Sequence record: MG655267.1
Length of the DNA: 64,000 nt
Reading direction: 5' to 3' (one strand)
The notes beneath the pieces are model-generated. The model ran no database searches and was not told where the DNA came from. It saw only the letters and a program-made list of their open reading frames with translations. Positions 5,540-43,382 of this stretch are shown piece by piece. Position numbers and translations under genes: made by a program. The first letter of the stretch is position 1. Every line of letters begins with the position of its first letter.

Positions 5540-5569
5540 AAGGGGTTTCGGCCCCTTTATTTTTTTTTT
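5540..5569 (+). terminator. Rho-independent terminator
   Basis: aaggggt-ttcg-gcccctt plus a long T run. Confidence 0.8.
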
Positions 5570-5660: not shown

Positions 5661-6191
5661 ATGAAAAACACTACTTTTCTAATTGAAACCCTGAAACGTA
5701 CCTTGGAAGAGCTGGATCAGACAACGTTATCAACTGAAGAAAAAATTGAATTAACCACCATGGTTGAGAAAGAACATTTCGCTAAGCTGTTCGGTATCCG
5801 TGCAGAAGAAACCACTCAGTTAAGTGAGCGCGATTTCTCTAAACTGACCGGTTATCAGTACAACAGTGTTTACGCGGGGTTAGATTTGGTTGGTAATTTT
5901 GACTGGGTGATCACGGCGGATGGCGCAGTCGTAACAAGAGAAATGCCTCATCACGGCAGTAACCATTGGTTGCCACCACGCAGACAATTTATATTCAGAC
6001 TGATTGATGAAGGTCGTGAAATATTTAATGAAGGCACTAGACTGCTTGTTATCAGAATTGAGAACACCATCACCAAAGAGGTCTTTTCAATTAACTTTGA
6101 AGTTGCTGATATTCAAATCGGCAGTGCGGTTGTTAAAATGGTTGAGCGTTATCTGTTCGATTATTACAGGGTCAGCGTCAAGAAACTGTAA
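5661..6191 (+). CDS. Hypothetical protein
   Basis: 176 aa, RBS ggag, AT-richer than the core genes. Confidence 0.75.
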   Translation: MKNTTFLIETLKRTLEELDQTTLSTEEKIELTTMVEKEHFAKLFGIRAEETTQLSERDFSKLTGYQYNSVYAGLDLVGNFDWVITADGAVVTREMPHHGSNHWLPPRRQFIFRLIDEGREIFNEGTRLLVIRIENTITKEVFSINFEVADIQIGSAVVKMVERYLFDYYRVSVKKL

Positions 6192-6205
6192 AATATGAGT
6201 TGCAG

Positions 6206-6236
6206 AAAATCTCAGACCTATATGACTGGGGTGATA
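6206..6236 (+). promoter_or_regulatory. Putative phage early promoter, copy 2
   Basis: Exact 31-bp repeat of 5600-5630. Confidence 0.65.
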
Positions 6237-6294
6237 AAGAGTAGTGAATACTCTTAACCCCTAACCCAATTAACCTTAAGTATGGAGTAGTATC

Positions 6295-6585
6295 ATGACT
6301 GTAACTTTCTCTCAGCAAATGCAGGTTGTCGAATCTATCGCTGTGATGCAGGAAAAAGCAATGGAACTGCAAGTTGCTACCAAAGCGTGTTACGACGAAG
6401 TCACCCGTCTGGCCAACCGACTGGCTGACATCAACGATCCACTCGGCTTTCAGAAAGCCTATGAAGAATATCGTACCAAGCTGGCAGAAGCGGATGTATT
6501 AGCCGATGCTACTCGCCTGGCTTACAATATGTCAGACGCTGCACTGAAAACCATCCTGGGTGAAGCTAACCCAACCTTTCATTAA
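6295..6585 (+). CDS. Hypothetical helical protein
   Basis: 96 aa, RBS ggag. Confidence 0.75.
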   Translation: MTVTFSQQMQVVESIAVMQEKAMELQVATKACYDEVTRLANRLADINDPLGFQKAYEEYRTKLAEADVLADATRLAYNMSDAALKTILGEANPTFH

Positions 6586-6624
6586 TAGTTAATTACTCAT
6601 CGTCATTACGCCTCGGAGAAACTC

Positions 6625-6834
6625 ATGAGCGATTTTATTAGCAACCTGTTCGAAATCGCTATTGCAGTTTTTTCTGTAGTGGCGATGGTTAAATTGATTA
6701 AATCTGATAATGCCTATATTGCAGAAACAGTTCGTATCATCGATGCCTGCGCTTCTTTACAGGAAGGGCAAGTGATTCAGGGCGAAGTGGTTAACACCAA
6801 AGCCCACACAACCAACTTATACATCACCCATTAA
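6625..6834 (+). CDS. Hypothetical membrane-anchored protein
   Basis: 69 aa, hydrophobic N-terminal stretch (LFEIAIAVFSVVAMV), RBS ggag. Confidence 0.65.
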   Translation: MSDFISNLFEIAIAVFSVVAMVKLIKSDNAYIAETVRIIDACASLQEGQVIQGEVVNTKAHTTNLYITH

Positions 6835-6856
6835 TCTACTTGTAAGGAATACACCT

Positions 6857-7318
6857 ATGTCAAACTCTATGTTCATCTGCCTGTCACTGTTAGCGGTTAT
6901 CTCTGTCTCTGGTGGTATCGCCTTTGCCAAGAGCCTGTCACCGACCCATGCCATGATGACCGCCTTTGCTTACTTACGTGAGCAACTCGGTGATGACGCA
7001 GCACAGTACGAATACGATAAACGCTCACACCTTCTTTGCATGACAAACCTGGTGGAAACTAACTATGCCCTGGTCTGCGGTAAGCACTTTGAACGCGCAG
7101 AACAAAAACGTGCATGGTTAGTTAAGGAAGCAGAAGAGATCCAGCTCACCCCGCGTCAACAATTGATGCTGCTGGACTCCTTACTGAACCTGAACACCCG
7201 TCCTGAACAAGCAAAGAAAATCGTTAAAGTACGTTCAACCAAAGAGATCGTTGACTTGGCTGCGAAGTATGCGAGCGACAACCGTCGTATCGAAGCTCCG
7301 CTGGCCTTGTTCCGCTAA
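6857..7318 (+). CDS. Hypothetical protein with N-terminal TM/signal segment
   Basis: 153 aa, MFICLSLLAVISVSGGIAFA, RBS aagga. Confidence 0.7.
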   Translation: MSNSMFICLSLLAVISVSGGIAFAKSLSPTHAMMTAFAYLREQLGDDAAQYEYDKRSHLLCMTNLVETNYALVCGKHFERAEQKRAWLVKEAEEIQLTPRQQLMLLDSLLNLNTRPEQAKKIVKVRSTKEIVDLAAKYASDNRRIEAPLALFR

Positions 7319-7352: not shown

Positions 7353-7385
7353 GAGCTCACCCTAACCGGTGGGCTCTTTTTTTTG
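7353..7385 (+). terminator. Rho-independent terminator
   Basis: gagctcacc-ctaacc-ggtgggctc plus a T run. Confidence 0.75.
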
Positions 7386-7443
7386 TCTTCTTTTTTTTTT
7401 TGTTCGGGGATTATATGTAGTCCATATTAGCTAAGAGGACATT

Positions 7444-15332: not shown

Positions 15333-16877
15333 ATGACAACTCCACTTATTAACTATTACACGGGCTTCCTGGAATCGACGGGCGCTGTGATTGATCAGTC
15401 CACCGGTGTGGTGAGCTATGAACGTTCCACCGGTTTAAAGCCGGTGTTAATCGATGGCAAAGAGCTGATCCTGCCCATCCGTGCGTTTCAGGATAAGCCG
15501 GACTGGACGCGTTATGTGCCATTCCATCCGCTGTCTGAATCGATTGCTCGTGGTGAATCGGAAGTGCTGCAGAAAGCCAAAGAGCTTATCAGTCTGAAGC
15601 TGTTCCTGAAATATGCGGAACTGTCTGAAGCGCTGCTGATGCTGGCAGTGAACTCTGAATCGCAGGCGAAGCTCACCCCTACCCAGATGAAGTTCCTGGA
15701 AGGGCTGGGTGATGCGGATGAGAAAACGGTTGAGAACTTCTCAAAGATCCTGGCGAAATCCAAAGCGACCTTTGAAGGTGGTGAGAACCGTTGTCTGGTG
15801 TCGTTGTTCCTGAAACGTGGCGGTACACTCAACGGGCAGAAGTTTGCCCGTCTGTGTGTTGTAGCGTTCCCGTACTACGAAGCGCTGTGTAAGATCGAAA
15901 ACGAACCTGCGGATAAGCGCGTGGTGTTTGGTGTGCCATTGCGTGCCAAAGACATCAAAGTGCTGAAGCGTCTGCATGAAGTGATCGTACCGAACAGCGA
16001 TGACGGGATCTACTCGATCGGGACTAACGTACAGACTGCGCCGTACTGGGGTGCATTGATGATGACTTACGTCAACATCCTGAACCAGTTCAACAGCGTA
16101 ATCAAACCGTTCTCGAAAGTGATCAAATCGCTGAAGGCGGTTGATACCTCGTGGGATGTGGGCGATGAGTTGCAGCAGTTCCGTGCTGAGATTCCACCGA
16201 TGCCGTATAATGAAGGTGCAGATTCCAGCAAGCCAGCTGAAACAACCCAGCCCCTGCAGACCCAACAGCAGCCTGTTGCGACGCAGCCACAAACCATCCC
16301 ACAGCCAACCGGTAATCTGGTACAGCAGCCAGCAACCATCCAGCAAGCGCCGAGCTTTAACGGTAATCAGAACCAATCCAACACGGTCACTCATCCGCCA
16401 GCTCACAACGTTAAACCATCTAACGGTGGCGGTGTGAACTTCGCTGATGCGATGAACAAGTCGGGCATGGGGATGATGCCACAAATGCAGATGCCAGGGA
16501 TGATGCCGCAGATGTATCCTCAGCAGGGCTACCCACAGCAGCAGATGCCAATGTATCCGCAACAGCAAATGTATCCTCAGATGCAGATGCAAATGCCGAT
16601 GCAGCAGCTTCCAATGCCACCGGTCTCTCAGCCACAGGGTCAGCAGCAATTCCCGCAGCAGATGTATTATCAAAATGGTCAGTTGCCAATGCCGCCGGTT
16701 AGCCAGCAGCAACAGCAAGGTTACCCACAACAGGGCATGTATCCTCAGCAGCAGATGATGCAGCCTCAAATGTACCCACAGATGCAAATGCCTGGCATGA
16801 TGCCACAAATGCAGATGCCAGGGATGATGCAACAGGGTTACCCGCAACAGCCACAGATGTTCCAGTTCGGGCGTTAA
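15333..16877 (+). CDS. Conserved chimallivirus protein (phiKZ gp70-like) with Q/M/P/Y prion-like C-terminal domain
   Basis: The folded N-domain has FHPLSESIARGESEV. The last ~210 aa are low complexity. Confidence 0.75.
   Translation: MTTPLINYYTGFLESTGAVIDQSTGVVSYERSTGLKPVLIDGKELILPIRAFQDKPDWTRYVPFHPLSESIARGESEVLQKAKELISLKLFLKYAELSEALLMLAVNSESQAKLTPTQMKFLEGLGDADEKTVENFSKILAKSKATFEGGENRCLVSLFLKRGGTLNGQKFARLCVVAFPYYEALCKIENEPADKRVVFGVPLRAKDIKVLKRLHEVIVPNSDDGIYSIGTNVQTAPYWGALMMTYVNILNQFNSVIKPFSKVIKSLKAVDTSWDVGDELQQFRAEIPPMPYNEGADSSKPAETTQPLQTQQQPVATQPQTIPQPTGNLVQQPATIQQAPSFNGNQNQSNTVTHPPAHNVKPSNGGGVNFADAMNKSGMGMMPQMQMPGMMPQMYPQQGYPQQQMPMYPQQQMYPQMQMQMPMQQLPMPPVSQPQGQQQFPQQMYYQNGQLPMPPVSQQQQQGYPQQGMYPQQQMMQPQMYPQMQMPGMMPQMQMPGMMQQGYPQQPQMFQFGR
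16473..16830 (+). repeat. 34-bp direct repeat within the low-complexity domain
   Basis: atgatgccacaaatgcagatgccagggatgatgc occurs at 16473-16506 and 16797-16830 (MMPQMQMPGMM). Confidence 0.85.
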
Positions 16878-30740: not shown

Positions 30741-30764
30741 ATCTTTTTTTTTTGGTTTACAGCG

Positions 30765-31160: not shown

Positions 31161-31217
31161 ATAAGGGGAAGTTAAGAAAAGCAACCTGAGGGTCCGTCCG
31201 TGATCCCTCATAATGTA

Positions 31218-31680
31218 TTACTTCATACCGTCCAACTGCTTTTGAAGTTCCTTTAACTGACGGCTTGCATCCGGCGTCTCGGCGTCATGATCTCTGATCG
31301 CTTCAATAAACGACTTCCGTTTGCAATAAGGATACTTCATCCATTTATCAAATGACAAACCAAATTTGCCCAAGATATCCGCACGCAGATATTCGAGCTC
31401 ATACTTTCGATACCCAACTAACGCCAGCGAGTCTTCCTGCTCGACCTGTAAGATTAACGAGAGCGGCGAGGTTTCCACGTTATGGTCAATAATCCCAAAC
31501 GTGTCATCGTAAAGCTCTGTTAATCGAATTAGTGGATACTCCCAGTTCTCGGTAAGAAACGTGGGGTTTTCTAACGCGACATCCCAGGCATCGGACCGAT
31601 CACTTTCGGACAGACCGAAATCCCAATGGATTAGATGTCGGCTTGATCGAACGTCTGATTCAGTGTATTCGTCATTAGGG
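31218..31680 (-). CDS. T4 gp51-like / 'GT-extension'-like tail assembly chaperone part, probably reached by -1 frameshift
   Basis: The C-terminal KFGLSFDKWMKYPYCKRKSFIEAI resembles gp51/TAC-T motifs. There is no ATG between the upstream stop and residue W-M near the end. Confidence 0.55.
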
Positions 31681-33250
31681 TAAAAAAAACCCGTGCTACG
31701 TTCAGCGGGGTGTATGCCGGGAAGGTGTTGCTCACCAGCGGTTGACGCGCCTGGCAGTTCGGGCATTTCCAACGCGGCACCGCAACCACACCGACCGTTA
31801 CCCGGTTGATGAACTTGTTCAGCTCTTCAAAGAACGGTTTACGCATATCCGGGGTTGCACTGAATTGCTTCAGCAGTAATGCCACGTCATCGGCCGACTC
31901 AACATAGTTGCCATCGTTGAACTCGATCTTGGTCACCCAGTGGGCGTAACCGCGCATGGAGGACAGCGCTGCCTGTTTGTTGATGTGCTGCTCACGCTGC
32001 TCACGCGTCATGCTGTCGTTGAAGCTGTCGGTGATCGCTTGTTGAATACCGTTGATCCAGGCATAACCCGCTGCATTCTTATCTTCGAGTGATGGCACCC
32101 GCAGATAGAACTTCACATCTTTCACAGTGATGACATTGTCTTTCATCACTTCAAAGCCGGTCTGATAGGCAATGACCTGCTCGACGGTACGGCCGCTGAA
32201 GTGAGACATGTGCGCACGCTGGGTTGGTGACAGACGATTGTTGTCAATGATCGACAGACGAGAGACGTTAACTTTCGCTGCTTCAACATGCACACACTTC
32301 TTCGGATCGGCGGCACAGGCAGTGACCATGTGGTAGCCAGACTTAAAGCGTGCGCCCAGGTAGGCGTTAGCGATCAGATCGAGATCCTGCTCTTTGATTA
32401 ACGGCAGCAGGGTTTTCTTATCGGAGACGCCGATGCTGCTGTCAGTGACCATACCCAGCAGGAAGTCAGTCATGTGCTTACGCACCACGACATCCAGGTT
32501 GTTAAACACCAGACCGTTGGTACGACGACCGAGGATCGCTTTCTCAGCCATGATGGCGGTTTGCATATCCACAAACTCATCATCACCGGCAATCAGCAAC
32601 GTAACCCAGATACCAGAATGTGGCAGCGGCAGATGGACATAGTCGCCCATGTTCATCACGCCACGAGCACGCATCACTGCCTGTGGACCGGTCAGCAGTT
32701 TAGTGCCTTCGGTACTGCGCTTCACTGGCGGGCGAGAAACACCCTGCACTTTGTTATTGTCGAGCAGAATACCCTGCAGCCACTGCGCACCATCTTGACG
32801 AATGGTCAGGTTCAGACCAGAACGGTACGACAGGTTGGTGATGGCGTTACTGGCCAGGGATAGCCAGATCATCGCTTTATCAGCACCGTACAGACTGACG
32901 ATCTCTTTTAAGATCTTCTTGTCTTCGGTGTTGGTGTCGATCTCATTGATCAGCGCCGTCGCTGCATCGTAATCCTGATGCATAATAGACAGCACACCTT
33001 CCGTGCCGACATCCTCCATGGAATTCAGCTTTTCAATGATCGGGTTCTGATAGAGCGGATCGAACGCCTGCTCAACGGCTTCAGCTTCAGGTGCTTCAGC
33101 TTCGCCCTGTTGGCCGGTTTCTGCTGGCTCGGGATCGGTGCCAATAGTACCAGTAGTCGCCGGACGGCCTGGATCAACTTCAGGAATACCAGAGTGGTTT
33201 TCTTCAACAGGCTCTTGCTGTGACAGAATGGATGGGTTATCACCGGACAT
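31631..33250 (-). CDS. Conserved chimallivirus tail/baseplate assembly protein (T4 gp26-like/TAC-like) with Cys motifs
   Basis: 539 aa with an acidic N-terminus, CAADPKKC, WKCPNC and a terminal VFFTL. Strong RBS (aaggtaagga). Confidence 0.65.
   Translation of the reverse strand: MSGDNPSILSQQEPVEENHSGIPEVDPGRPATTGTIGTDPEPAETGQQGEAEAPEAEAVEQAFDPLYQNPIIEKLNSMEDVGTEGVLSIMHQDYDAATALINEIDTNTEDKKILKEIVSLYGADKAMIWLSLASNAITNLSYRSGLNLTIRQDGAQWLQGILLDNNKVQGVSRPPVKRSTEGTKLLTGPQAVMRARGVMNMGDYVHLPLPHSGIWVTLLIAGDDEFVDMQTAIMAEKAILGRRTNGLVFNNLDVVVRKHMTDFLLGMVTDSSIGVSDKKTLLPLIKEQDLDLIANAYLGARFKSGYHMVTACAADPKKCVHVEAAKVNVSRLSIIDNNRLSPTQRAHMSHFSGRTVEQVIAYQTGFEVMKDNVITVKDVKFYLRVPSLEDKNAAGYAWINGIQQAITDSFNDSMTREQREQHINKQAALSSMRGYAHWVTKIEFNDGNYVESADDVALLLKQFSATPDMRKPFFEELNKFINRVTVGVVAVPRWKCPNCQARQPLVSNTFPAYTPLNVARVFFTLMTNTLNQTFDQADI
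31682..31692 (-). other. Candidate -1 ribosomal frameshift slippery site (G GTT TTT TTT A)
   Basis: A run of 8 T on the minus strand gives the heptamer T TTT TTT in frame 0 of 31631-33250. The -1 frame is the open 31218 ORF. Confidence 0.55.
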
Positions 33251-33267
33251 TATGCTTATCCTTACCT

Positions 33268-33735
33268 TTACTTTTTAGTGGGGTCGACCTGAACCGGGTC
33301 ATTGAGTTTGCTTGCTGCGCCAGCGGCAACCGCGTTAGCATGGGCGCTGTCTGACATGGTCAGAATGGCAGCACCGTGACGTTGCATCGCATCCAGCAAT
33401 TTACTCTGCAGGACGATGTATTGTTCGTGCACACTGAGGAAGTCAGCGATGGTGCTGTCATGCAAGGCATAACCGGTTTTGCCTTGATGCTGCTGCTTGA
33501 TCATCGGCAGTGTTTCATCGATCTCTTTGACTACAGCCAGCGCCGCTTCGATGTGCGAGCTTAACGCAGAGGGGTTTGGCTGAAAGCGAATGATGTTGGT
33601 GTTGACGGCCATGAGGCAAGTGTTGCTCAGCTCATTGCGCAAATTAATCGTATAAGTTGCCGCAGAATCCAGGTACTCCCAGAACTGATCGGGCTGATGG
33701 ACCTCTGGTGCGAGAGGCGGTTCATTGGTTGACAT
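33268..33735 (-). CDS. Conserved hypothetical protein
   Basis: 155-aa helical protein, RBS aagga. First gene of the minus-strand unit. Confidence 0.7.
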   Translation of the reverse strand: MSTNEPPLAPEVHQPDQFWEYLDSAATYTINLRNELSNTCLMAVNTNIIRFQPNPSALSSHIEAALAVVKEIDETLPMIKQQHQGKTGYALHDSTIADFLSVHEQYIVLQSKLLDAMQRHGAAILTMSDSAHANAVAAGAASKLNDPVQVDPTKK

Positions 33736-33827: not shown

Positions 33828-34739
33828 ATGAGTGATTTTACTGACTTAACGAAATTGAAGACCGAATTACCACAAAACATCCAAAAGATTGATGAGCAGG
33901 ATGATGTGGGTGACTTCAGCGATCTTAACGACTACCTCATGACCATCATTCCGGATGAACGGCGTGAGCGCTTGATCGCGATCTGTCAAAACCTGAGCAC
34001 CCTGCAATATCATCAAGTCCAGCCCGATGTGGATCGGTTACTGATGATGGCCAACGACGGTGAAGCGCCGTCGGTACTCGATGACTTGACCCGGTTGTTA
34101 TTTGAACACGCTTATGACTTAACGAAAAACATGGGCTTTAACTGGGCTGATGAGATTGAGTTTGATCAGCTGTTCCTGCTCGGTGATGTAATCGAAGGTG
34201 CCATGTTGATTGATGGCATGGAAGACTACGGCGACCTCTCAGCGATCCTGGATGGGGATGACTCAGTTGAAGAGAAGGTGGTGGATATCTGGGGCCTGGT
34301 GCTCGACAAAGACATGCACCATCTCTTTGAACAGATCCAGTCCATCGAACCGGCGGTGATCAGCGGGATCAAGCAAGTCACGACCCGACCGTATGCCGAA
34401 GACGATTATGCAGATGTGCAGCGCCCACTTGAGTTCGTGGTTGAGCGGTTGGTGAAAGTCCGTGAAATGATGAAGACCGATGGCATTGCTTACCAGCATG
34501 TGGCCAAGGGCGGGGCATTAGGCGTTGAGCTCGATTCACTGATCACGCTCTACACCCCTGAGTTGAATGCCGTGACCGATCCGATCGAACTGACCGACCT
34601 GCTGGTTGCCTTTACCCTGATCAGCAACACCCCGGATGGGTTGGTGAAATCCACCGCATCCCGGTTGGCAGAAAAATGGATTGATGATATCGAAGTCATC
34701 AATGTGGTAGGTAAACATATCGACAGGTATCCCGTGTGA
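33828..34739 (+). CDS. Conserved acidic protein (phiKZ gp79 position), probable virion protein
   Basis: 303 aa, directly upstream of and overlapping the vRNAP gene. Confidence 0.65.
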   Translation: MSDFTDLTKLKTELPQNIQKIDEQDDVGDFSDLNDYLMTIIPDERRERLIAICQNLSTLQYHQVQPDVDRLLMMANDGEAPSVLDDLTRLLFEHAYDLTKNMGFNWADEIEFDQLFLLGDVIEGAMLIDGMEDYGDLSAILDGDDSVEEKVVDIWGLVLDKDMHHLFEQIQSIEPAVISGIKQVTTRPYAEDDYADVQRPLEFVVERLVKVREMMKTDGIAYQHVAKGGALGVELDSLITLYTPELNAVTDPIELTDLLVAFTLISNTPDGLVKSTASRLAEKWIDDIEVINVVGKHIDRYPV

Positions 34740-36046
34740 ATATTCGCGACTATTTAATCATGGCCTTTCGGGCAGGGGCTTACAAGCAACGCCAGTGGGT
34801 GTTGAGTGTCATGAGTATCACCCAGACCCCGGATGGTAAATCCGTAGCAGACAGTATGATCCCGTATCAGGCACACCGCATCAACATCGGTGCGACACTC
34901 GATTGGGCTTACTGGGACGACTTCAACAAAACCTTTGTGCCGATCGAGGGAGTGGATGTTAACTTCCCGTTGTTTCGACCCGAGGATCAATACACACTAC
35001 AACCTGGGGATTTCGCCAATGTCACTGAAGAAGTTACTACTACTTTCGGCCGTATTCTGGCTAACCATTATTATTTTATCGATGTGGTCGGTGAACGTGT
35101 CCCCTTTCAGAACGTAGAATTCAACCGCGGGATGCTGGAGAAGATCTACAAGGCCCGGGTATTAGAAGACGCCCAGGACTTGCGGCGTTCTGATCCGTTC
35201 TACCTGACCGTCGATGAATTCAAACGCTCCGTGGATAATGGCTTTGCCTTGGGTGGGTTGTCAAAACTCTGTGTGCCGACTGCTTGTCCGGAAACCATGT
35301 ACCCGCCGAAGTTCATCATCGAAATGCGTGACCGTCTGTTTGAAGAGCACAAGGATGAGCTCAACAACCCGGTGGTCATGGGGCGTATTCAGGATGAGCT
35401 GTTAAAGCACTATCGTGAGTTCCTGATGTCCACCCCGTCAGCCAAGTTCTTTGTGATCAAGAAGACCATCGACCAGGCCTTCAACAACATGTTCCTGACC
35501 GGTGGTATTGCGGGGGCTTTTGGTGGTAACACTGTTATTACCAACTCGCTGTACGAAGGCTGGAACCTGAAGAACTTCCCGGCGTTAGTGAACGGCTCTA
35601 TCGAAGCTTCCTTTGACCGTGGTGCAGCTACAGCTGATGGCGGCGAGAAAGTGAAGATGTTGATCCGTGCCACGCAGAACATCCGTATCACCGATGATGA
35701 TTGTGGAACTCAGCTTGGGGTGCCGTGGGTGATTGAAGATGCCGGCAAGGCACGCTTCATTAACTCTTACATACTGGATAAGGGTGTGACGATTCTGTTA
35801 ACTCCGGAGAACATTGATAAGTTCGTCGGTAAACCAGTCATGACCCGTTCACCCAGCTTCTGTAAGAAATCCCATGGCGACTCCTGTAAGTTCTGCGTCG
35901 GTGCGCATAACGCCACCAACCCACGCGGGATGTCTTCTGGTACCTCGAAGATCGGTTCTACCCTGATGTTGTTATCGATGAAAGCGATGCATAAAGGCAG
36001 TAAGATCGATCTGATCGAGTATAACCTTGATGAGGTCTTTAACTGA
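34736..36046 (+). CDS. Virion RNA polymerase beta' C-terminal subunit (phiKZ gp80-like)
   Basis: SFDRGAATADGG (bridge-helix region), DDCGT, RSPSFC...CKFCVG and LSMKAMH (trigger-loop-like). Confidence 0.9.
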   Translation: MNIRDYLIMAFRAGAYKQRQWVLSVMSITQTPDGKSVADSMIPYQAHRINIGATLDWAYWDDFNKTFVPIEGVDVNFPLFRPEDQYTLQPGDFANVTEEVTTTFGRILANHYYFIDVVGERVPFQNVEFNRGMLEKIYKARVLEDAQDLRRSDPFYLTVDEFKRSVDNGFALGGLSKLCVPTACPETMYPPKFIIEMRDRLFEEHKDELNNPVVMGRIQDELLKHYREFLMSTPSAKFFVIKKTIDQAFNNMFLTGGIAGAFGGNTVITNSLYEGWNLKNFPALVNGSIEASFDRGAATADGGEKVKMLIRATQNIRITDDDCGTQLGVPWVIEDAGKARFINSYILDKGVTILLTPENIDKFVGKPVMTRSPSFCKKSHGDSCKFCVGAHNATNPRGMSSGTSKIGSTLMLLSMKAMHKGSKIDLIEYNLDEVFN

Positions 36047-42868: not shown

Positions 42869-42878
42869 TCTTTTTTTT

Positions 42879-43382
42879 TTACACTAAAATGCCGTTAAAG
42901 GCCACCGGGTCATTAGCCAGGAATGGATTGTACCGAACCACGGACCCTAATGTGTAATCGTAATAGATGAAATCCAAGCATTGCGCACCCTGGTAGGTAG
43001 TCCATGACTTTGATAGATAACCATTGCGATCTAACGCAACGTAAGCTGGGCGGCTTGACAACGGAGTAAACTTCATCAACACTTGTGGCTGGTTGTTGAG
43101 GTTGTTTGTAAATACAGGCAGGGAAGGATGCGCATGCCTTGCAATGGAGCACAACCAAGAGTCGTAGGTAAACCACTCTTTATACGGCGTGCCGTACATG
43201 TTGTTGGATGTGTTCAATGTAGTATTAACATATTTACCGGCATTGGCGGACATGCTGGTAGTCGCGTTCGCTACCTTCGTATATTTGGCGGCATTGGCCG
43301 CAAGCCACGCCTCGAATTGCGCATAGGTCATCTTAGTACCTATCTGTGGCTGTGACTTACTGCCCATTAACATCTCTAACAT
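42879..43382 (-). CDS. Probable virion accessory protein, MLE(M/L)LM paralog 1
   Basis: 167 aa, clearly homologous to 43395-43904 (NMYGTPY, ARHA.P, LDRNGY, LDFIYYD). Confidence 0.7.
   Translation of the reverse strand: MLEMLMGSKSQPQIGTKMTYAQFEAWLAANAAKYTKVANATTSMSANAGKYVNTTLNTSNNMYGTPYKEWFTYDSWLCSIARHAHPSLPVFTNNLNNQPQVLMKFTPLSSRPAYVALDRNGYLSKSWTTYQGAQCLDFIYYDYTLGSVVRYNPFLANDPVAFNGILV

Follow-up and report, generated by a model that had tools for sequence, protein, structure and literature searches.

Why does a core gene of jumbo phages run over a tract of T's shortly before its stop, just where a second long frame lies open one base out of step, and are these one gene or two? The locus lies in what I call the window, the whole stretch of 64,000 nucleotides analysed here from record MG655267.1, which comes from Erwinia phage Bosolaphorus, species Agricanvirus ray. 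The upstream gene, gp270, is core gene cg18, and the first-pass annotation was therefore right to assign the DNA to a nucleus-forming jumbo phage. According to the supplement of PMC10299810, the cg18 row of the Chimalliviridae core genes is the family of gp270 and phiKZ gp77, and gp270 belongs there by its homology to phiKZ gp77, Goslar gp081 and RAY gp267 together with conserved synteny. A tblastn search with gp270 matched 221 phage records, among them two further homologues, PhiPA3 gp074 and 201phi2-1 gp136, whose records are annotated as similar to phiKZ gp77. A full HMMER scan, from which the depth of the comparison came, puts the gp77 family at 1,482 clusters at 50% identity; a word-indexed protein search returned only the same 13 close relatives. 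My answer to the question, held with considerable confidence on the evidence of the sequence and with the long product itself not observed, is that the gp270 family uses a programmed -1 frameshift to make a short and a long product from one start.

Table 1. Features of the gp270 locus (positions are those of the window).
Feature	Position	Strand	Basis or remark
gp271, upstream neighbour, 155 aa, in phiKZ gp78 position	33268..33735	-	synteny
gp270, zero-frame gene, short product 539 aa	31631..33250	-	ORF and GenBank CDS BOSOLAPHORUS_270
gp269, GenBank CDS, 182 aa, as deposited from ATG 31766 deep inside gp270	31218..31766	-	
Putative slippery heptamer U_UUU_UUU, in phase	31682..31688	-	sequence and conservation in 76 loci
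-1 continuation, 154 codons and TAA (31220-31218)	31218..31682	-	conserved, mostly helical C-terminal domain
Dual-coding overlap: zero frame, last 16 codons and stop; -1 frame, first 17 codons of extension	31631..31681	-	
Hairpin GAGGG...CCCTC directly 3' of -1 ORF stop	31188..31209	-	sequence

The zero-frame gene has AAGGA 9 nt upstream of its ATG. It follows gp271 on the same strand after a gap of 17 nt, and the two are probably co-transcribed. Besides the phiKZ gp78-like gene, the surroundings consist of small hypothetical genes and of genes for RNA polymerase subunits (virion RNA polymerase). At the 3' end the minus strand reads ...CGG GTT TTT TTT ACC CTA..., and the slip site stands, as the first-pass annotation had it, 16 sense codons before the stop (TAA, 31633-31631). 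The perfect heptamer claimed there is present in phase as T_TTT_TTT, although its span is 31682-31688; the 31682-31689 originally given for it is the 8-base T run that contains it. The P-site codon would be TTT 31687-31685 (F522) and the A-site codon TTT 31684-31682 (F523). This run is the sole A/T run of at least 7 within a long open frame of the 64-kb window, and the five other A/T runs of at least 8 are all intergenic. Sixteen RAY-like genomes, each sequenced independently, show the identical T8 run and frame relation, which are therefore not a homopolymer sequencing error.

In the proposed decoding, most ribosomes would pass the U run and stop 16 codons on, releasing the short product of 539 aa, in which the final 20 residues make up a C-terminal helix according to the AF2 model of gp270 (pLDDT 87.3); the zero frame of the overlap belongs to this helix (residues 518-537 in that model). 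Some ribosomes, with tRNA-Phe on both UUU codons (F522 in the P site, F523 in the A site), would slip back by one base and go on in the -1 frame for another 154 codons. The predicted long product of about 677 aa would have its 523 N-terminal residues in common with the short one and carry a helical domain in place of the short tail.

If this is correct, the site should be preserved among relatives more strictly than the protein requires. I compared 88 related loci, 87 of them complete and one running off its contig; 76 are non-identical, and these span 22-100% amino acid identity and 25-59% GC. All 76 match PHROG 4585. All 87 complete loci, and phiKZ gp77 too, have T_TTT in one and the same phase, 8-37 codons ahead of the stop. 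An in-phase N_TTT_TTN heptamer was found by script in 82 of the 88, with T_TTT in the same phase in 5 more. The same layout is observed in phiKZ gp77, Salmonella SPFM2, Vibrio BONAISHI, Halocynthia phage JM-2012 and Bacillus phage AgentSmith. At the four central positions of the heptamer (the second and third bases of the P-site codon, the first and second of the A-site codon) every one of the 76 loci has T, and the next most conserved bases (95% and 84% T, flanking these) are the ones that P-site re-pairing needs. Part of this could be due to the protein, since the fixed phase of the run could in part reflect a conserved Phe-Phe. The base preceding the P-site Phe codon, a synonymous third position, is T in 84%. 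All 72 P-site codons that encode Phe are TTT, whereas elsewhere in these genes the share of TTT is 37%. TTT-TTY occurs at none of 25 other FF dipeptides, and no other in-phase T_TTT_TT exists in 33,578 codons. Thus what would be expected of a programmed -1 site, a heptamer in the correct phase that is conserved at synonymous positions and avoided elsewhere, is observed. The prediction of TTT rather than TTC across homologues holds for the P-site Phe codon, as does the prediction that the downstream frame is always -1, which it is in all 76 non-identical loci.

The heptamer itself varies within limits. It is T_TTT_TTT or T_TTT_TTC/A/G in 63 of the 76 loci, the T_TTT_TTG and T_TTT_TTA forms, each found at a single locus, being less canonical. 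Also less canonical are the remaining 13 loci, in which re-pairing would be perfect in the A site only (G_TTT_TTT, G_GTT_TTT, G_TTT_TTC and A_CTT_TTT). The length of the T run ranges from 5 (5 loci) through 6 (15), 7 (33) and 8 (21) to 9 (2), and the phase is fixed throughout.

Could RNA polymerase rather than the ribosome be slipping? That the ribosome does so is inferred, and a polymerase, probably the phage non-virion enzyme, that added one U on the T run would yield the same two isoforms. This is the rival that survives best, although I consider it unlikely. The site consists of a homopolymer alone, 7-9 T's long in 56 of the 76 loci; how prone the phage-encoded polymerase is to slip is not known; and at the T_TTT_TTG locus, where the A-site tRNA would re-pair poorly, an inserted U would work. 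The absence of a recognisable ribosomal stimulator points the same way. The 60 nt downstream of the site have a mean structure z-score of -0.33, against -0.43 for control windows, and no structure there is conserved; the only consensus hairpin of the RAY-like group (alifold) begins some 37 nt past the site, and at -6 kcal/mol it is weak. I rejected an upstream Shine-Dalgarno-like element as well: the partial GGAG of SA002 is not conserved, and conservation upstream of the site is accounted for by the protein sequence. A stimulatory element, a common and not an obligatory companion of such sites, was thus not found.

Efficient polymerase stuttering, however, is reported on runs of about 9 or more, and 20 of the 76 loci have just 5 or 6 T's. 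The arrangement of the conserved bases also speaks against it, with four invariant T's at fixed P-site and A-site positions followed in conservation by those that P-site re-pairing uses. A requirement for length alone would not set the phase, and for this reason the fixed phase of the run counts against polymerase slippage. What that explanation would call for, about 9 or more A/T with length and not phase conserved, is not what is seen. If the ribosome is indeed what slips, the heptamer alone appears to set the isoform ratio. A low, fixed percentage of slipping is then likely, because neither a conserved downstream structure nor an upstream Shine-Dalgarno-like element was found; this ratio, too, is inferred.

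The -1 frame behaves as coding sequence. At the site it reads GGT TTT TTT TAC CCT... and is open to the TAA at 31220-31218, so that both the open frame to 31218 and the 677 aa (523 + 154) first predicted for the fusion are confirmed as a reading of the DNA. It is open for 149-181 codons in all complete loci (150-181, median 162.5, in the 76 non-identical ones), whereas the +1 frame has a median open length of 9 codons. At any one locus, 150 open codons would arise by chance with a probability of about 7.5e-4, and the -1 frame is open in 76 of 76. The nearest upstream stop in the -1 frame lies 2-155 codons before the site (median 15), and since frame stops flank the site, the shift is confined to a short interval around the T run. 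The -1 pieces form a single alignable family in which F22, Y58 and E83 are nearly invariant, and a conserved motif, H-x-x-x-x-x-F-G, crosses the zero-frame stop codon. The frame is under purifying selection: against phage AH06, dN/dS is 0.12 over codons 18-85, a part in which AH06 has no start codon, and the dual-coding overlap has no synonymous differences from AH06. As far as its sequence can tell, the domain has no recognisable relative; it matches PHROGs 13274, 12109 and 7580, all without known function, and an AF2 model of the piece alone was unusable (pLDDT 40.6).

The public records tell a different story. All 13 of those inspected annotate a separate downstream coding sequence, none has the recoding, and gp269 would accordingly be a gene translated from its own start, to which the overlap and the T run are incidental. 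In 201phi2-1 a TTG even overlaps the upstream stop. I regard this as very improbable. The annotated starts lie at non-homologous places and give products of 68-182 aa. Ahead of the conserved F there is no ATG, GTG or TTG in 47 of the 76 loci, and ahead of the conserved Y none in 11 of 76; most candidate GTGs just upstream of the F coincide with a conserved H-V. In AH06 a stop closes the -1 frame 15 codons ahead of the slip site and the 85 codons that follow the site contain no start, phiKZ likewise has no possible -1-frame start for 85 codons, and purifying selection acts on the start-free part. In the window the -1 frame offers just two starts ahead of the site, TTG 31772 and ATG 31766, both without a Shine-Dalgarno at a usable distance, and the first ATG past the site comes at about codon 113 of 154, all of which agrees with the original description of these starts. 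An independent start at ATG 31766 or TTG 31772 can be rejected on these grounds, the ATG also being missing from AH06. The -1 frame is thus an overlapping frame that is long, coding, and without an initiation signal of its own, and I read the gp269 start as a mis-annotation and gp269 as not a separate gene.

Termination-reinitiation is a further rival, in which ribosomes that finish gp270 would start again close by in the -1 frame with no canonical signal to do so. The frames overlap by just 8-37 codons, and stop-start coupling is frequent in phage operons. Even so, I give this still less credence than two separate genes: usually no start codon is near enough to the stop, the RAY-like conserved -1 motif crosses or begins before the zero-frame stop, and the conservation of the T run at synonymous sites is left unexplained. 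Lastly, it is scarcely conceivable that a homopolymer sequencing error, frequent as these are in such runs, or a real frameshift mutation in a former single ORF has produced the layout, for the frame relation stays the same in RAY-like genomes, 16 of them independent, and across all 87 complete loci, divergent as they are, with runs of 5-9, selection acts on both frames, and an in-frame extension is found in none of 122 diverse homologues, all 122 aligned representatives ending 1-34 residues past the FF motif.

What might the two products of a programmed frameshift do? The first-pass annotation called the fusion a tail/baseplate chaperone, and remote similarity gives this some support, although nothing else does. 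The C-terminal two thirds of the gp77 family bear a remote likeness to T4 gp26 and gp51, weak in sequence and clearer in predicted fold, and with these the family has a C-terminal CPxC motif in common. Two of the 76 members match PF12322, both below threshold. The best of them (L047) covers profile positions 107-212 of 219 with 23.5 bits, short of the gathering cutoff of 24.5; for comparison, T4 gp26 reaches 215 bits and T4 gp51 177. The window protein has no match to PF12322 at E <= 0.1, and none in Pfam, NCBIfam or PDB. PHROG 150, 'baseplate hub', is matched, again below threshold, by 3 of 76 members. Among predicted structures in BFVD, the fold of the gp270 model matches 'Baseplate hub assembly protein, bacteriophage T4-like' (E 5e-6, TM-target 0.55), 'Baseplate protein' (1.3e-5) and 'Putative baseplate hub subunit' (1e-4). 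A PDB fold search with the AF2 model returned nothing under E = 1, hence no solved structure was matched. Alignment by hhalign to the single T4 sequences reaches probabilities of 9-11%, around the CPxC motif. Matches of sequence or profile to PDB entries (the WD-repeat design 'Tako8', RIB43A, chitinases) were dismissed as chance.

T4 gp26 and gp51 are listed as hub assembly chaperones (PMC3004832). From the distant likeness of the shared body to gp26/gp51, and from the short and long chaperones of lambda G/GT as an analogy, I infer that the two isoforms may act together in baseplate-hub assembly, a weak functional assignment. The family has four invariant cysteines (C312, C319, C496 and C499 in gp270), and the cg18 protein is probably a zinc-binding one with two isoforms. 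Direct evidence is lacking: in the records of 201phi2-1 and phiKZ the gp77-family gene, unlike its neighbours, is without any remark on virion location or mass spectrometry, Goslar gp81 is unnamed in the virion structure paper, and the functional literature on phiKZ gp77 homologues (SPN3US amber mutants, the PCH45 transposon screen, an antisense screen and the Goslar virion structure) yielded nothing on the gene.

The T4 comparison does not extend to the layout, as had been suggested at first. T4 gp26 and gp51 are paralogues on opposite strands, divergently transcribed, and the -1 domain is like neither (hhalign probabilities 0.3% and 2%), so that I rejected it as a relative of either. T4 has no -1 extension, and its two proteins have 208 and 249 aa against about 540 for the gp77 family. 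T4 gene 26 also gives two products, gp26 and gp26', but through an internal start.

A frameshift is a conserved feature of the tail assembly chaperones of long-tailed phages, such as lambda (G/GT) and, among myoviruses, P2 (E/E+E') and Mu. Like lambda G/GT, gp270 would slip by -1 near the 3' end of a morphogenetic gene and yield two proteins that share their N-terminal part, a short one and one extended at the C-terminus. As in that class, the heptamer would work without a strong stimulator, and the arrangement is kept where the sequences diverge. In contrast, gp270 does not lie between tail tube and tape-measure genes, having phiKZ gp78-like and virion RNA polymerase neighbours instead, its shared part of about 520 aa is much larger than lambda G, and the heptamer is U_UUU_UUU/C in place of G_GGA_AAG. 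Neither gp270 nor the -1 domain matches a tail chaperone in Pfam or PHROG, and the 'tail assembly chaperone' entries matched by the gp270 model in BFVD have E >= 0.6, too weak for membership of that family. The other obvious comparison is E. coli dnaX (tau/gamma), which has A_AAA_AAG as its heptamer, preceded by a Shine-Dalgarno-like element and followed by a hairpin. It resembles the gp270 proposal in its bacterial tandem slippage on a homopolymeric heptamer and in giving two proteins at a fixed ratio from one gene. However, the shifted frame of dnaX stops almost immediately, making the shifted product the shorter one; that of gp270 would be the longer, and no stimulator was found for it.

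I found no published account of a frameshift in phiKZ-like or jumbo phages. Taking the family as a whole, I lean, with some reserve, towards an ancient and universal -1 frameshift that defines cg18 in the Chimalliviridae and their relatives, including a Bacillus phage, with the products as isoforms of an enlarged gp26/gp51-like hub assembly protein, the annotated downstream ORFs as fragments of the long isoform, and the whole as a second, independent class of conserved recoding in the assembly of tailed phages, beside G/GT. If true, a core gene would need correction in several hundred jumbo-phage genomes, including phiKZ, PhiPA3, 201phi2-1, Goslar, RAY and the SPN3US-like phages, an unrecognised protein of about 680 aa would join their proteomes, and fixed-ratio recoding in tail and baseplate assembly would extend beyond the G/GT tail-chaperone position. 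The distant likeness to T4 hub assembly chaperones, proteins that have themselves long been poorly understood in their mechanism, is also a first functional lead on cg18, hitherto a 'hypothetical' core gene. For gene finders the slip site is a compact and very well conserved test case, annotated wrongly in every record inspected.

Finally, the hairpin beyond the -1 stop was not called a terminator by a consensus scan. It marks where the conserved coding block ends and may serve as a transcript end or a processing signal, and its stem is retained in AH06 through compensatory changes.

The slip site in this window is one example of a recoding site that is deeply conserved in a core gene of jumbo phages. 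Erwinia phage vB_EamM_Bosolaphorus (MG655267; Agricanvirus ray) matches the region at 100% identity, and RAY, Ea35-70 and 13 other records match it at 98-99%; of these, RAY has been characterised as a nucleus-forming phage (PMC10299810). The 539-aa ORF, gp270, ends on the minus strand in ...CGG GTT TTT TTT ACC CTA..., with 16 sense codons between the second TTT and a TAA. From this sequence the first-pass annotation had proposed a -1 frameshift, and its observations were confirmed: the heptamer, the open -1 frame of 154 codons and the early starts without Shine-Dalgarno sequences are all present. The sole correction is that the 8-base span it quoted contains a 7-base heptamer. Upstream of the T run the -1 frame offers only TTG 31772 and ATG 31766 as starts, both within gp270, and neither is preceded by a Shine-Dalgarno sequence at usable spacing. 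Within the 64-kb window this is the sole A/T run of at least 7 in a long open frame. Five longer or equal T runs (8-11 bases) all lie outside open frames of at least 100 codons; about 0.6 runs of at least 8 T's are expected from base composition, and the five are probably terminator tails or intergenic signals.

Features at the slip site, and other T runs, in the window (MG655267.1)
Feature	Position	Strand	Remark
gp270	31631-33250	minus	annotated hypothetical protein in MG655267
gp269	31218-31766	minus	annotated hypothetical protein in MG655267, overlapping gp270
T run, 8 bases	31682-31689	minus	
In-phase X_XXY_YYZ heptamer	31682-31688	minus	
-1 frame	to TAA 31220-31218	minus	open 154 codons from T run
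Five T runs, 8-11 bases	5560-5569, 7377-7384, 7391-7401, 30744-30753, 42871-42880	plus	preceded by C/A, then G/A

AH06 (81% nucleotide identity) carries the same CGG GTT TTT TTT ACC; its -1 frame is closed by a stop 15 codons ahead of the T run, and the first 85 codons of that frame past the run are free of ATG, GTG and TTG. The peptide encoded by this start-free stretch is conserved between AH06 and Bosolaphorus; codons 18-85 of the -1 piece have a dN/dS of 0.12, and the stretch overlapping the zero frame shows zero synonymous changes. Salmonella phage SA002, Erwinia phage pEa_SNUABM_37 and Proteus phage 10, at about 40% amino acid identity, keep both the 49-nt overlap geometry and TTTTTTTACC. 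Records of close relatives annotate the start of the downstream gene at differing, non-homologous internal codons.

gp270 is homologous to phiKZ gp77, 201phi2-1 gp136, PhiPA3 gp074 and EL gp47 (from notes in the records), and within the chimallivirus core genome the family is cg18, a core gene entered as 'hypothetical protein' (supplement, PMC10299810). The site, together with an open -1 frame, was found in PhiPA3 (G_TTT_TTT), 201phi2-1 (T_TTT_TTT), pEa_SNUABM_54 (T_TTT_TTG), Bacillus phage AgentSmith (T_TTT_TTA) and phiKZ (ACT TTT TTT ACT), as well as in a SPN3US-like Seoulvirus, Vibrio phage BONAISHI and Halocynthia phage JM-2012. The phiKZ -1 frame has 165 codons, its first start codon lies 85 codons past the slip site, and RefSeq PHIKZ076.4 (81 aa; 16443-16685 of the phiKZ record, L090) is its 3' end. 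A pattern search from a nine-homologue alignment added 80 IMG/VR loci, giving 88 in total, one of which runs off its contig end. An in-phase N_TTT_TTN heptamer was found in 82 loci, and the remaining five keep T_TTT at that phase, as G_GTT_TTT or A_CTT_TTT. Across the 76 non-identical loci on which statistics were computed (GC 25-59%), the -1 extension spans 150-181 codons (median 162.5), and the +1 frame, read from that point, closes after a median of 9 codons and never stays open for 150 or more. The zero-frame stop follows 8-37 codons past the site (median 14), and the closest -1-frame stop upstream lies 2-155 codons before it (median 15).

The nucleotide signature, numbered relative to the A-site codon, has T in 100% of loci at positions -2 to +1 and in 95% at -3. 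The last base of the preceding codon (position -4) is T (84%) or G (14%), and position +2 is T (67%) or C (30%). Re-pairing of two tRNA-Phe in tandem requires exactly these conserved T positions. By number of loci, the heptamers comprise T_TTT_TTT (41 loci), T_TTT_TTC (21), G_TTT_TTT (6), G_GTT_TTT (3), G_TTT_TTC (2) and, in single loci, T_TTT_TTG, T_TTT_TTA and A_CTT_TTT. At other sites in these genes 37% of 1,102 Phe codons are TTT, the 25 other Phe-Phe pairs include no TTT-TTY, and no further in-phase T_TTT_TT occurs in 33,578 codons; thus, the slippery sequence is selected for at the slip site alone and avoided everywhere else.

The ribosome would undergo -1 tandem slippage at the heptamer, and I hold this mechanism with good confidence. 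Transcriptional slippage at the T run would yield the same proteins. It is improbable, as the phase of the run is fixed and 20 loci carry merely 5-6 T's (runs of 5, 6, 7, 8 and 9 occur in 5, 15, 33, 21 and 2 loci), although without transcript data it cannot be excluded and both mechanisms could contribute. As to starts within the -1 frame, 47 of the 76 loci offer no possible start codon from the upstream stop up to the conserved F, and 11 offer none as far as the conserved Y; most candidate GTGs a few codons 5' of the conserved F coincide with the conserved H-V position. Independent initiation of the downstream ORF, termination-reinitiation, and sequencing error or a pseudogene are each contradicted by several observations.

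Ribosomal slippage appears to need no help from nearby RNA. The downstream 60 nt fold no better than gene-body control windows (mean z -0.33 vs -0.43), RNAalifold on the RAY-like group gave just one weak hairpin, about 37 nt downstream, whose bases are constrained by both reading frames, and conservation upstream of the heptamer tracks the protein motif P-L-D/N. My conclusion is that the heptamer works unaided, as is usual in phage tail-chaperone frameshifts. This suggests a low fixed ratio of products. Scanning 1.84 billion representative proteins in full with HMMER returned 1,482 clusters of the gp77 family (791 at E <=1e-30); among 122 of the best, aligned, none has an in-frame extension, and each ends 1-34 residues (median 15) past the Phe-Phe motif.

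Programmed -1 frameshifting is known in phage morphogenesis, but in this gene family and virus family it seems to have gone unnoticed. I found no published frameshift in phiKZ-like, chimallivirus or jumbo phages in the full-text literature (subscription journals were mostly outside its scope, and an earlier mention is possible), and none of 13 annotated records inspected has a joined CDS. Gene callers start the -1 ORF at arbitrary internal codons, giving products of 68-182 aa (PHIKZ076.4 and ORFs in the related phage records L002-L009 and L091-L093). With these arbitrary starts, several records, AH06, pEa_SNUABM_54, AgentSmith and phiKZ among them, lack annotation over 60-220 nt of conserved coding sequence.

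Handled separately from the zero-frame protein, the -1 pieces can be aligned as a single family in which F22, Y58 and E83 (window-piece numbering) are nearly invariant, with an H-V...F-G motif near the start; 73 of 76 match PHROG 12109. Pfam and PDB searches gave no match, hhalign gave a probability of 0.3% against T4 gp51 and 2% against gp26, and a single-sequence predicted model was unusable. Judged by these comparisons, the domain has no recognisable relative among Pfam, PDB and T4 gp26/gp51. Virion or mass-spectrometry flags in the phiKZ and 201phi2-1 records are on neighbours, not on this gene or the downstream ORF, and gp81 is not named in the Goslar virion structure paper. The absence of flags fits a non-structural or low-copy assembly factor, although it proves nothing.

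The zero-frame protein likewise has no match in Pfam, NCBIfam or PDB sequence and profile searches. Its AlphaFold2 model, built with the 122-sequence alignment, is confident (pLDDT 87.3, pTM 0.87), with residues 1-49 disordered and acidic, a mixed alpha/beta body and a C-terminal helix (518-537); F522/F523, where the slip would occur, thus lie one turn inside this helix. C312, C319, C496, C499, D289 and W398 are invariant in the family alignment, and a putative zinc site is a reasonable inference. The N-terminal 50-60 residues (residues 1-60; gp270 taken as 31634-33250, minus strand) are acidic, Pro/Glu/Thr-rich, predicted disordered (pLDDT about 42) and unconserved within the family; some relatives (SPN3US-like phages, phiEaH2, PHROG 8054) carry about 140 additional N-terminal residues instead.

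A PDB fold search found no solved structure similar to the model (best E = 1). Among predicted viral structures, family members aside, it matched a 'Baseplate hub assembly protein, bacteriophage T4-like' (E 5e-6, TM 0.55 on target), a 'Baseplate protein' (E 1.3e-5) and a 'Putative baseplate hub subunit' from a T4-like Aeromonas phage (E 1e-4). PF12322 is matched by two of 76 family members (best 23.5 bits vs a cutoff of 24.5, C-terminal halves aligned) and PHROG 150 'baseplate hub' by three, and hhalign of the family profile against single T4 gp26 or gp51 aligned only the C-terminal CPxC region (about 10% probability). On this evidence, kinship of the gp77 family with the T4 hub assembly proteins, as a distant and enlarged relative, is a moderately supported lead, and membership is not demonstrated. 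In T4 (NC_000866), gp26 and gp51, listed as hub assembly chaperones (PMC3004832), are full-length PF12322 members (8.8e-64 and 3.9e-52; 115802-117228, or 5803-7229 of the T4 locus L094) and therefore paralogues. They lie on opposite strands and are transcribed divergently, and the T4 record annotates 26' as an internal-start product of gene 26.

The segment 31160-31209 (minus strand; about 5743-5800 in the AH06 locus, L002) has, directly past the -1 ORF stop, a hairpin preserved through compensatory changes in AH06, followed, upstream of the next gene, gp268, by a stretch nearly identical in the two phages, AGGTTGCTTTTCTTAACTTCCC. Together these could be a transcript end and a phage promoter or leader; a consensus terminator scan did not call the hairpin. 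The divergent neighbours (33828-36046, plus strand) comprise gp273, which encodes a virion RNA polymerase beta/beta' subunit, and a gene resembling phiKZ gp79. This synteny, in which the pairs gp77-gp78 and gp79-gp80 stand back to back, extends from phiKZ to RAY, AH06 and PhiPA3.
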